DNA of 64,000 nucleotides from contig OU015569.1 in the NCBI GenBank assembly GCA_907165135.1, positions 7,874,001 to 7,938,000 on the forward strand, in the 5' to 3' direction. Source of the stretch: Oikopleura dioica. Its lineage: Eukaryota > Animalia > Chordata. Of the stretch, positions 33,271 through 46,243 are shown one piece after another; within the stretch, counting starts at the first letter, position 1; each line of letters opens with the position of its first letter. The notes below the pieces were generated by a model. That model did not search any database. It worked only from the letters and a program-made list of their open reading frames with translations, and had not been told where the DNA came from. The position numbers were made by a program, and so were the translations under genes.

Positions 33271-33611
33271 GAGTGTGCGTTCCCATCGTTGCTCCTCTGT
33301 TGTTTCTGATGACCCCTTTTTCTACTCGGAGAACCGATTTTGTAGGGGATAAGAAGGAATTTCCAGCAAAAATCTTTCTCGCAGTAGTGGGCGGCTCATG
33401 TGACGCCTACGTGAAAACGGGCGTAGGCGACTCTGCGCGACGACGGTCAATGAACGTAGTATTTTCCGAAAAAGAGGAAATCCTACTTCGAGTTTACATA
33501 TGTTGTAAATGATAAGGGCAATCTAAAGGGGAATGAATGGTTGAATGATTCTTATAATTTTAAGAAATAGAAAGTAATATAAGCGTTATAAAAGCTGAGC
33601 CTAGAATCTAC

Positions 33612-36600
33612 TTATAAATTTGGCTGAATAAAATTGGAAACACTTTCCGGAGGTACCGCGGGAGAGGGCAAATTGGCTTTGACATTTTCCTTGTTTTTCA
33701 TCGCATTCATGGTCTTCTGAAGTGACACGGCCTGCTGCGTTAAATGCTTCAAAAATTCCGTCGATTCCTTGGTCTTCTCGTGCTCGTCGCCAAGAATAGT
33801 CCTGTATGTCTTGCATGCCTCTTTCTCGTGCGAGATCGCTTCCCGATAGTTGCTCTTGAAACTAAGGACACGCGCAATCAGATGATGACCCAAAGCTTGC
33901 TTCACAACCTAGGGACCAATGGATTAGAGATTCTTTCTGAATTTATGAAACGCACATTTTGTGGCTGGTGTATTTCGTAGATACTGAGGGCGTTTTTAAA
34001 GAAGCCCTCGGCGGCATCGAACTGCGCGGCCCAATAAAGTACCAAGCCGATATTCGTGTCGATGGTTGCCATTTCGGGATGGCCTTCGCCGTGAATGAGT
34101 TTCAAGAGGTAGCGAGCGCGGTAAAGAAGTTTCAGTGAGGCAGGTACTTGGTTGGTAGCGAAGCAGTAGTGGGCAAGTGTAATGTACTCTTGAATGGTGG
34201 AAGGAGAGTCCAGTCCGTGACATCGCTCGGATAGCAAGCACGCCTGAATTGTACTTTTGCGCGGGGTTCTCTTCCTTGATTTCAGAAACATGATAGTGCA
34301 ATGATTGTACTCATCTATTGTTCACAAATTTTGCATTTACCTTGTGCTGCTTTTCAATAGCTTCGGTATGGTTGCCCTGAATGTAGTCCAAGCGAGCCAA
34401 CAGTCTGTAACTCGAGATCACATCAGCGTGGACATTTCCATAGACAGAAGTGAAAAGTCCGAGAGCTTCTTGGATCATGATTTGACCGTCCTTCATGTAT
34501 CCCTTGGAAATGCACTGCTGACCTTTTTGGAAGAGAGCATTTCCATCAGCTGCCTTCGGGTTCAAATGTTTCACGATCGGAAACATAGACATGATATCCT
34601 AATACATTTTAGAATACAATATATTCGCAAGACTTACCTCGTCTGTAAAGGGCTGCTTCGTTTTACTCGCAAGGTCGTAGTTACGAAGATGAATCTGAAT
34701 TCCGTTCTTCAAGCAGACATCCCGCAAGAGCGATGCTTTTTGAATCTTGTAACTGCTGCAGATTTGGTCGATCGACTTGCAATCAATGCTAACGTGGAAG
34801 TAGGAGCGAGCGCGCTTCTCAACGTCTCGCCAAATTCCTTCGGGGGTGACTCTCATCCATTCGTTCGTAAGTCGCTGCCATCCGATGGAGGTAGAGGATT
34901 CATTCTGCTTTGCAGCGGGCTTCTTTCCTTTCTTCTTTTTCTTGTTTGACTTAAATTGTGTATTCACTAGATTGCAAGATGTTTTTACGATACCTTTTCG
35001 GGATTTCCGTTTATGTCATCAAAGATCTGAGGTATTTGGACGGTGCAGGAAGCGAATAAGCAGTTGAGAAGATGCGCAACAGCCTGTCCGGTGACAGACT
35101 GGTCGGTCTTTTGAAGATAGCTTCGGAAGATCCACTTAATGGCACGAGAAATCATCTCCGCGTTAACAGTGTTGATCACGTGCTCGAGGTTCGCATCTTC
35201 TTCCGCGAGAAGGGCTTTTTGAATAACTCCGAGGTATCGAACGCCGATACCCTTGATTTAATAAATCAACTTCTTATGTATTGCATATTTTACCTTCGAA
35301 TGCAAATTTTCGACCATTGACACACAATCAAGGCAAGAGTCCTGTCCTTCTTTGCATTCACGAATGAAGGCTGGAATCTGCTCATTGACCAAGAAGGCAG
35401 CGACATCTACAACTAACTGCTTTTGACGTCGAATTTCAGCGTCATCGGCGATGACGTTTACGGTGGGCGAGAAAATGTCAGGATTAAATCTTATGTCGAG
35501 CTCATCGGTGGAAATTGATCCGACGGCACTGGCAGCTTCTTTGATAGACTGGGTGTTTTTAGCCTGGGAAGAAGTTAATGACATTTAAAAGGAATGGATT
35601 GACATACCATTAGTTTTACTTTTTTCTCCTCCTCGCCTAACTCTTGCATCGCGTCAAGTTCCTTCTTTGCTTCAGCAAAGTTCTTCATCGCAAGCTTCCA
35701 ATACTGAAGGTATCTGTTCTCACAGAACGCCTCGACAAGTTCATGTCTATGAGCAGCGAGTTTATGCGTGTGTGTTCGTGGGAGATGAAGCTCCTTAAGA
35801 TTTTCGGGGAAAAGAGAAATATCTTCCTTAGTTAGCGCGTCTCCCAAAAAGTTGACGTCTGGTGGCATCGTCCGGAGCAAGTCAAGAACGTAATTACGCT
35901 TGTCGTTGCCTTGAATTCCTTTCGTCTCCACACTGGTGTACATGGTTATTTCTTTGCCGTCAGAGTTCTTCGCCTTGTGGATCTGCTGTTTTGTGGTCTT
36001 CGCTACTTGTTCCAAAAGACCATCATAATCTTCATGAGAAACGATTGTCTTTCCGAAGTCAATCGAGCCGTATACAACAGACTGCTCTTGTTCGCGCTCC
36101 AAGATTCCTGGAATGATCGACTGAGGCAGGGTTTCAATTTAATGTGCCAAGGCTATCCCTTAATTTCTACATGGCTGTCCGAATCTAGTACTTTGACACC
36201 TTTTTGGAATCGTCTTGACAAGATCTGTCGATTTATTGAGCGAAAATTTTAAAAAAATTGATGGCTTCGGACTTACATGGACTTGAAAAATGCACTAGAA
36301 AACACAAAAACCGATAAAAACTCGGAAATGACTTTGAAATCTAAAAATCGGCCTCGATAAAACAAAAGATCTTTTTATGAGGATTCTTAAAAGGTATGAT
36401 AGTACTAGGCTGGCACCTATAGTTTTCCCGCAAAACGAGAAGCAAATCTGGCACATTAAATTGAAACCGGACCTGAGCGGTAACGCGGAAGCCCTTGTAG
36501 TCGACAATCACAGTACCCAGGGTGTGGAGACCTTTGACATCTGCTTGGTTGTAAACTTGAACCCCCTTCAGGTCGAGAAGAGGAGCCACGAAAGCTGCCG

Positions 36601-37848
36601 CATCACCTCCGAAATTACCATAGTGCTCCCTGACGTCAAAGCCAAGCGAGAAAAATATGTTGCTCCAAATAAACATCTGACTGCGAGGTTCATCTCCAGG
36701 ATTGATCGCCAAGACACCCCCGTCAACAACAAGCATAGCGCCTCGAGTCGCCGCAGAAACGAAATCTGAGTGGACTTTAAAGAAGGCACGATCTCGAAGA
36801 AGTCGCTCGTGAATTGTGCTTGTTGGAAGCTCTCGAACAGCTTGAAGCTCTTCATTCCATTCTCGTGTCTGTCCTGGAATGTGTTCTTCCGTGCTTCGAG
36901 CAGTGTACGCATCCTCGGCTCGTACGCAATCCACCTGATGCTCTTCCTTAGGAGCGAGCCAAGAGAAGAGTTGGAAATTTGTGGGAAGACGTTCGAATGG
37001 GTGCAGAGAGCATCGTTTTTTATTGGTTAGTGCCCACCCTTTTTGAAAGCAGGAGAGAGCTGTGAAAGCAAGTCCACCAAAGAATGAGATAGATACGGAA
37101 CAGTAGCTGGAGTAGGGTCGAACTCGTCAATAGTAGATTTATTAACGTAGAATCCGCGAGGGGAGGCAGTTACTTCAAACGCTCGGCCTTCGTTTGTTTT
37201 GATTGAAAGATAGAGAAGATCACCGCGAAGTCTCCGTGGGTTGGGAGGAGGATTCCACATGGACATGGCCAGACGAGACAGACAATTAGCCTCCGCCGAG
37301 CGCGCAGGAAAGAGAGGTTCGAATACTGGCTCAGCGGACTGCTGGGCATGCCTGGGAGCGAGGAATTCACTCTCATTCTTTGGATTAATTTCACCTTCTG
37401 TTATTGTATTCAAGTAGCTCATGGAAGCTCCGTTGAGACCGTTCATAGCGTCGACCCAGTCGAGAGACTTGGTCAAGTCGCGAACATGGCGAACATGAAG
37501 GCGAGCTTCTCGAATCGTGTAAGGCTCTTCGACAACTTTGAGGAGTACGTTGTCGGTAAGACCTTCAATGGAGCGAAGTTCAGCAAAGTGATCGAGTGGA
37601 ACTCCGTTAAACTGAAGACTGAAGCACGTTCTCTGGCAACAATCTTCCCGATCGGTGATGTAGCCGCGAAGATCATTCACCAGTTCTCCGAGACTCAACT
37701 GAAGCTCGAAAACCTTAGAGCCAGGAACATCGATTTTGACTGTCACATTCGCATCAGCGATTTTCTCCTCGGCGATAATATCGTCATGTGATGGCTCAGG
37801 AGCAAGCTCAGGAAGTTTAGTTTCCTGTGCTACGGCTACAGCAGCCAT
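33612..37848 (-). CDS. CLUH: Clustered mitochondria protein (CLU/TIF31/clueless)
   Basis: [11 protein letters not shown]; [18 protein letters not shown]; [19 protein letters not shown]; [11 protein letters not shown]; [15 protein letters not shown]; [16 protein letters not shown]|SIIPG; [16 protein letters not shown]; TPR C-terminus [13 protein letters not shown]. Confidence 0.98.
36126..36472. mobile_element. TIR-bounded MITE forming essentially the whole 352-nt CLUH intron (36121-36472)
   Basis: Left end GCAGGGTTTCAATTTAATGTGCCA (36126-36149) and right end TGGCACATTAAATTGAAACCGGAC (36449-36472) form a 24-bp inverted repeat with 20 perfect inner bases. CTGAG is duplicated at both junctions. 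Confidence 0.85.
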
Positions 37849-46050: not shown

Positions 46051-46171
46051 CAGGCTTCGAAAAAATGAGTCTCCGCGTTGTCTCTTCTCGATAACTGAGA
46101 CAGCGTGAGTGTCTCCATGAGGATGAATCACCGATAAAGAGGCAGCTCGGAGACTCATTTTTCGAACCCTG
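46051..46171. mobile_element. 121-bp hAT-type MITE with 8-bp TSD
   Basis: TIRs CAGGCTTCGAAAAAATGAGTCTCCG / CGGAGACTCATTTTTCGAACCCTG. Exact ATCCCGCT on both sides (46043-46050 and 46172-46179). Confidence 0.9.
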
Positions 46172-46243
46172 ATCCCGCTTTATTTATTATAACCTTCATT
46201 CACCATTTGTAATTAAATAAGTGCTTAGAATTGGTCTTTTAGA

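Follow-up and report, generated by a model that had tools for sequence, protein, structure and literature searches.

The window analysed here, 64,000 nucleotides of contig C2 (7874001-7938000) in the 64.28-Mb, 19-contig assembly of Oikopleura dioica OKI2018_I69 (Okinawa lineage), contains on its minus strand, at approximately 33600-37848, the gene for CLUH (Clu/TIF31), whose CLU_N, CLU, eIF3_p135 and TPR domains were recognized in order by Pfam and which is present in one copy by a genome-wide check. Within the CLU domain, a proposed 352-nt GT-AG intron (36121-36472, minus strand, phase 0; C2:7910121-7910472) separates the codons for Q and S in RVTAQ/SIIPG, where the preliminary description of this DNA had placed it, and the junction sequence bears that placement out. 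Specifically, the minus strand reads ...CGC GTT ACC GCT CAG / GTCCGG...CCCTGC CTCAG / TCG ATC ATT CCA GGA (slashes here mark proposed borders). The upstream coding sequence (36473-36934, minus strand) matches positions 1-130 of the CLU profile (PF13236, E = 4e-47) and the downstream exon (35608-36120, minus strand), which leads into an ordinary 44-nt intron, matches positions 131-225; the former finish at 36473 and the latter begin at 36120, such that removal from GT to AG rejoins the profile. All 34 of the 34 site-spanning homologue fragments retrieved from databases are colinear across the junction, and alignment to distant CLUH proteins leaves neither gap nor overlap between the residues of the two exons; over the upstream exon, CLUH relatives are 60-73% identical. 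Unspliced, the transcript would instead be read into a stop 44 codons in (open reading frame [ORF] 36341-36934). The next three introns of the gene measure 44, 42 and 44 nt (35607-35564, 35293-35252 and 34993-34950), making this one 8 times larger than its neighbors, at the upper end of the 7- to 8-fold difference first reported.

The intron is a transposon copy, with no surplus base: its 352 nt are exactly a 347-bp non-autonomous element (36126-36472) plus one copy of a 5-bp target-site duplication. An inverted-repeat search delimited the left (36126-36149) and right (36449-36472) terminal inverted repeats (TIRs), which are 24 nt long with a perfect inner 20, and CTGAG on the plus strand (CTCAG in the coding sense) stands on both sides, at 36121-36125 and 36473-36477; repeat and duplication were both noticed in the preliminary description and are confirmed here. 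The first duplicate closes the intron and would give the 3' AG, while the second forms the last five nucleotides of the upstream exon and leaves an exonic CAG before the putative donor GT. On the plus strand, the element begins GCAGGG and ends CCGGAC, so that GTCCGG, its outer end as read on the minus strand, would act as splice donor. Removal of the element together with one duplicate restores the CLUH reading frame exactly. Further, the element carries an internal 67-nt inverted repeat (36185-36408, with arms at 36185-36251 and 36342-36408 that are 73% complementary), and the RNA of the whole intron is predicted to fold as one long hairpin, with a minimum free energy of -99.1 kcal/mol (z = -6.3; 0 of 100 shuffled sequences equalled it), in which the 5' splice site lies 4 nt and the 3' splice site 9 nt away from the terminal stem.

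The element belongs to a family. A DNA search of the genome recovered three more full-length copies at 93-99% identity and a truncated one, as well as a sister subfamily (subfamily B) that is approximately 76% identical, so that subfamily A comprises, with the CLUH copy included, four complete members and one truncated member. The subfamily A copies have the same ends, and each is flanked by a 5-bp repeat of its own (CTGAG, CTCAG, CTTAG and CTTAG); the sister subfamily is alike in this respect. The CLUH copy is 98.9% identical to a copy in an adenylate cyclase gene, with three mismatches and one indel in 347 nt, and subfamily B copies are 97-99% alike. A genome scan with a terminus pattern (CTNAG, GY, four unspecified bases and TTTCAATTTAAT), run alongside the reversed pattern as a control, gave 38 sites against 0 in the control when at most one mismatch was allowed, and 72 against 14 with at most two, the latter revealing further subfamilies. 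When JGI metagenomes were scanned for the 20-nt core of the TIR, two matches came up, both lacking the family's flanks and judged to be chance.

In total, we tabulated 21 complete elements ranging from 337 bp to 4.4 kb, every one of which is flanked by a 5-bp repeat (perfect in 19). The duplication follows a CTNAG consensus, with C in 20, T in 19, A in 20 and G in 21 of the 21 elements, and it tends to be preceded by a purine and followed by a pyrimidine. It can also be read as 3 bp (TNA), in which case the G...C belongs to the element; locus L038, where GTCAG faces CTCAG, fits the shorter reading better, while the duplicates of the other copies fit both equally. The empty site CTNAG and the spliced unit are the same under either reading. 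Among the 42 termini, 35 start with GT, 6 with GC and 1 with GA. The preliminary description had read the unequal ends of the CLUH element correctly, as GCAGGG and GTCCGG, and had taken the divergent end to provide the GT donor. The asymmetry is common to all of subfamily A and is thus neither private to the CLUH copy nor an edit made after its insertion; since most relatives carry GT at both ends, it is the GC end that looks derived.

Two further copies found in the genome-wide search split exons of conserved genes. The first (L002, C4:7587027-7587384) interrupts an exon of the adenylate cyclase gene (Guanylate_cyc domain) in the same GT...AG orientation and the same phase 0 as in CLUH. The second, a member of subfamily B (L007, C5:10276311-10276668), interrupts an exon of IFT122 in phase 1, its upstream flank corresponding to human IFT122 residues 1080 to approximately 1177 and its downstream flank to approximately 1177 to 1237. 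All three exon-splitting copies (CLUH, adenylate cyclase and IFT122) share an AG/GT...AG/ geometry. A further copy (L025) lies inside an older intron of a CHMP2/Snf7 gene, one is upstream of an adaptin gene (L006), another is beside an ABC-transporter exon (L026), and the remainder adjoin genes or occupy sequence with no recognizable coding content. We also observed a subfamily A copy (L003:1496-1935, in the C1:7544924 region) in reversed orientation precisely at an exon-intron border, the 5' end of an older LCMT1 intron. The only in-frame donor there is now G/GCAGGG, provided by the GC end of the element, and the sequence after the right duplicate is TAAGGG, one G short of a canonical GTAAGG donor, presumably the former one.

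Related Oikopleura lineages provide the corresponding empty sites. For CLUH, the open frame upstream of the insertion served as the query of a word-based protein search, which led to contigs assembled from ocean metagenomes (those of Tara for L028 and L030); a near-identical CLUH protein was not among the matches, records of this genome apparently lying outside the collection searched. Three related lineages, represented by L027, L028/L029 and L030, are 91-95% identical to the CLUH protein and, over the upstream exon, approximately 77% identical in DNA; L028 also shows synteny with the window, with rhodanese and Nop10 genes followed by CLUH. All four contigs have CLUH in pieces, with introns at other positions, and all four read uninterrupted through RVTAQSIIPG with no intron at that site, which in L028/L029 is a single CTCAG. 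For adenylate cyclase, three metagenome contigs (L031-L033), 88-92% identical to the locus over 3 kb, are without the element: their reading frame runs on as ...WLVREPE NFFENERF..., across one CTGAG only. Judged from these comparisons, the CLUH intron is a gain, and a recent one. The proposal, made before any of these searches, of a recent MITE-derived, introner-like intron (MITE, miniature inverted-repeat transposable element) from an active family is therefore supported, given multiple copies with duplications of their own, sister copies 97-99% identical, and sites left unoccupied in relatives for both CLUH and adenylate cyclase. Two findings that would have spoken against it, an intron position common to relatives and a lack of further copies, were looked for and did not turn up. 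The three adenylate cyclase contigs come from ENA assemblies ERZ27264819, ERZ23499026 and ERZ27264919; a close relative of the Okinawa lineage is thus represented in public metagenomes, and contigs such as these can supply empty-site alleles. In the opposite direction, three of the CLUH contigs carry an intron within a stretch that forms one uninterrupted exon in the window (36120-35608), at L028:5001-5907, L029:510-1416 and L030:485-1060, where ...ATRQQVHQV or ...STRQQV are the last residues of their genomic ORFs. The extra intron of the relatives and the new one of the window together show that intron turnover in CLUH runs both ways.

These results lead us to propose, with a probability of roughly 0.8, that a 347-bp MITE recently inserted at CTCAG in CLUH of the Okinawa lineage and behaves as a new phase-0 intron. 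In the mechanism we envisage, a non-autonomous DNA transposon would insert at CTCAG in the coding sequence and duplicate these five bases. The left duplicate would then supply the exonic CAG and the terminus of the element the GT donor, while the right duplicate would serve as the CTCAG acceptor, with the pyrimidine-rich TIR end before it. Splicing would take out the element and one duplicate, 352 nt in all, and thereby return the mRNA to its pre-insertion sequence. With GT at both ends of an element, as in most members, and a CTNAG target, an insertion would be bracketed as AG/GT...AG/ in either orientation, so its direction should make no difference. Finally, the terminal and internal inverted repeats could fold the intron RNA and draw the two splice sites together. 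The main argument that the cell splices these copies out is that three independent copies splitting exons of conserved genes share the AG/GT...AG/ arrangement.

Several points weigh against this reading. Use of the GT and AG sites by the spliceosome is something we infer from sequence, and the donor CAG/GTCCGG fits poorly with the other donors near it in CLUH (GTATGT, GTAAAA and GTATCG). The family is small, with three exon-splitting copies among 21 complete elements, whereas the introners (transposon-made introns) of Micromonas pusilla and Aureococcus anophagefferens number hundreds to thousands of copies; proliferation on that scale is not seen here. Given the youth of the insertion, selection may have had too little time to purge a harmful allele, and, the assembly being from one individual, it could be a heterozygous null. 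CLUH also shows an apparent 1-nt frameshift elsewhere, at 37032-37047 on the minus strand, within TTCAAAAAGGGTGGGC: read from its ATG at 37848, the gene ends in ...FKKGGH and a stop, while the +1 frame continues in agreement with the FKKGW(S/A) of relatives. An A5G3 homopolymer context suggests that this is probably an assembly error, in which case no intron separates what would otherwise be a "first" and a "second" CLUH exon.

Such considerations could be combined into a different account, namely that the insertion arose very recently, is not spliced and inactivates CLUH, as an allele that the sequenced animal carries in heterozygous form or that is confined to the laboratory line. The weak GTCCGG donor, the apparent frameshift and the mere three mismatches and one indel that set the copy apart from its sister, which leave little time for selection, all favor it, as does the fact that splicing is deduced from sequence; but the same AG/GT...AG/ geometry recurs where independent copies split three conserved genes, single-copy CLUH among them, the remainder of CLUH is intact with all of its domains, and the frameshift falls in a homopolymer run of a nanopore-based assembly. 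We consider this account unlikely. Somewhat less likely still is that the element is spliced through other, cryptic sites at the cost of a small in-frame change: a phase-0 GT does exist 12 nt upstream of the junction (CGC/GTTACC), and noncanonical sites have been reported for O. dioica (PMC4122922, in its summary of Denoeud 2010), but use of that GT would remove VTAQ, residues conserved in every relative, and the pairing of an element-end GT with a duplicate AG recurs at every copy of the family. That an old CLUH intron later received the element has a precedent in the copies within the CHMP2/Snf7 intron and at the 5' end of the LCMT1 intron, but an intron composed of element and duplication to the base, together with the lack of an intron at this site in three related lineages, already contradicts it and leaves it next to no credibility. 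The preliminary description had also offered a hAT-type reading, in which the junctions are an edited 8-bp duplication and the CAGGG terminus marks kinship with a MITE at 46051. The GCAGGG end does loosely resemble hAT termini, and a true MITE with an 8-bp duplication does lie nearby, at 46051-46172, but the duplication is 5 bp in 21 of the 21 complete elements and 8 bp in none, the TIRs of the two elements are unrelated, and the ORFs of the large relatives described below yielded no hAT domain, matching no Pfam family even at E up to 10. Both parts of that reading were thus rejected, and we give it a negligible chance.

The element at 46051-46172 is itself a 122-bp MITE of hAT-like appearance; its TIR is CAGGCTTCGAAAAA..., and its 8-bp target duplication, ATCCCGCT, is perfect. 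Another element, approximately 12.4 kb past the end of the window (L041:290-893; C2:7950420-7951023), has a perfect 17-nt TIR, CTGGGCTCGGCAAACTG, and a flanking repeat matching at 7 of 8 positions, ATCCCAG(C/G); by its ends and flanks, it is of another family than the CLUH element, with an 8-bp duplication.

Candidate autonomous partners of short elements such as the one in CLUH are found among the large members of the same family. Five elements of 3.5-4.4 kb (L019, C3:2399708-2403677; L020, C4:3500540-3504587; L023, C2:5248036-5252137; L039, C2:3931834-3935382; and L040, C4:7864238-7868676) encode a conserved protein, and they agree with the short copies in their termini and in the kind of target duplication. 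Subfamily B shares its termini with the C4 element, and L025 shares those of the C2 element. L039 and L040 are 96-99% identical, which implies that the large elements moved recently too. Their coding blocks retain 50-87% protein identity (tblastx), while the DNA of the more distant pairs is no longer alignable. The first block, of approximately 330-380 residues, ends in ...TDY, and in the four elements examined (L019, L020, L023 and L040) an intron follows at a conserved place, TDY G/GT...YAG/C(C or G) ATG GG, in phase 1 and filled with tandem and inverted repeats. By these G/GT...YAG/ junctions, the coding blocks are exons of one gene rather than two genes. Conserved motifs include VTDY-AMGVS, QSDGAxxQFW and SGHGKG-GEIDSSHG, which could be a DD(E/D) triad.

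The large relatives presumably encode the transposase that mobilizes the short copies, although their proteins have offered little by way of outside kinship, and this tells against the assignment. Pfam gave zero matches to the ORFs at E up to 0.01, and then again at E up to 10. A word-based search of 5.8 billion proteins with ORF1, exons being searched singly, matched only another copy in the same genome. An AlphaFold2 model of ORF1 built on a three-sequence alignment was poor (predicted local distance difference test score, 42). A first protein-atlas search with the protein of the large elements found nothing, and a second, based on language-model features, placed a 143-residue exon nearest to DUF7869 clusters with a score of 0.95. 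We treat DUF7869 as a lead only, as the PF25273 hidden Markov model finds nothing at the large elements. In a more ambitious version of our proposal, an active autonomous/non-autonomous pair, with a transposase outside the described superfamilies, adds ready-made, polymorphic introns to essential genes in either orientation; we put this forward tentatively, as a possibility that we would not expect to hold in full.

Among described DNA transposons, the target preference brings to mind PIF/Harbinger elements and the Tourist-like MITEs. In maize, PIF favors CWCTTAGWG with a TTA duplication, and these elements and the CLUH family share a palindromic target centered on TNA. If the duplication of the CLUH family is read as 3 bp, its termini start with GG, a further likeness. 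Beyond this, the two diverge: the PIF/Harbinger duplication is of 3 bp (TWA/TNA), whereas that of the CLUH family reads equally well as 5 bp; no DDE_Tnp_4 domain is found in the large elements, and PF13359 has zero matches across the genome; and the large elements hold one spliced gene, whereas PIF/Harbinger elements encode a Myb-like second protein beside the transposase. We found no description of the CLUH-element family in the literature.

How genomes come by new introns is an old question, and introners are now viewed as a major source of them. Algae, dinoflagellates and fungi have supplied most of the examples, and only rarely have the mobilizing enzymes been identified. The CLUH case adds a very young one in a chordate, for which the filled and the empty site and the rule of the target are all known, with sister copies in two other conserved genes and candidate autonomous relatives in the same 64-Mb genome. 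It also offers a specific way in which part of the extreme turnover of introns in O. dioica, long recognized, could come about. This animal has a generation time of days, several sequenced cryptic species and established laboratory breeding. The short generation and the sequenced cryptic species make the splicing, polymorphism and mobilization of the family directly testable.

That transposons make introns is already known in general, in other tunicates, in a metagenome-assembled genome (MAG) of Oikopleura and, reportedly, in O. dioica itself. The process was established by Huff, Zilberman and Roy (2016, Nature; as cited in PMC13326754 and PMC12130899) and has been surveyed since (Gozashti 2022, PMC9860276; PMC12130899, 2025). 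Table S5 of the 2022 survey lists 33 introners in the "Oikopleura sp." genome TARA_ARC_108_MAG_00223, while O. dioica (GCA_000209535.1) is in the genome list of that survey and, in the portions of it accessible to us, is named only there. Intron gain through inserted transposons has been credited to O. dioica by Denoeud 2010 (as cited in PMC3296678 and PMC3443670). Both the introners of the MAG and these gains are events of the same type as the CLUH intron, in its own genus. The tunicate Styela clava is also counted among introner-containing taxa (PMC12130899). In another larvacean, Fritillaria borealis, MITE-derived noncanonical introns have been described (Henriet 2019, Curr Biol; as summarized in PMC11282704). 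Like the CLUH case, these have TIRs and target duplications at the exon borders and occupy species-specific positions. Unlike it, they mostly have AG-AC or AG-AT borders and depend on an altered spliceosome, whereas the CLUH intron is canonical GT-AG.

The closest parallel is with the introners of Micromonas and Aureococcus. As in CLUH, these are non-autonomous TIR DNA transposons of aquatic hosts, in which the element provides one of the splice sites and the target duplication completes the second, and whose excision restores the coding sequence exactly. The properties by which introners are recognized are likewise found in the O. dioica family: near-identical introns in unrelated genes (CLUH and adenylate cyclase, at 98.9%), TIRs and a target duplication for each copy (21 of 21), and both exact restoration of the coding sequence and absence from relatives, for CLUH as for adenylate cyclase. 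Where the O. dioica family departs from those of Micromonas and Aureococcus is in its chordate host, in the presence of protein-coding relatives in the same genome, and in a design that pairs a palindromic CTNAG target with termini that are, in most members, both GT, and that would work in either orientation. It is in this combination of a clean and young insertion, an orientation-neutral design, coding relatives and a tractable host that we see the interest of the family.

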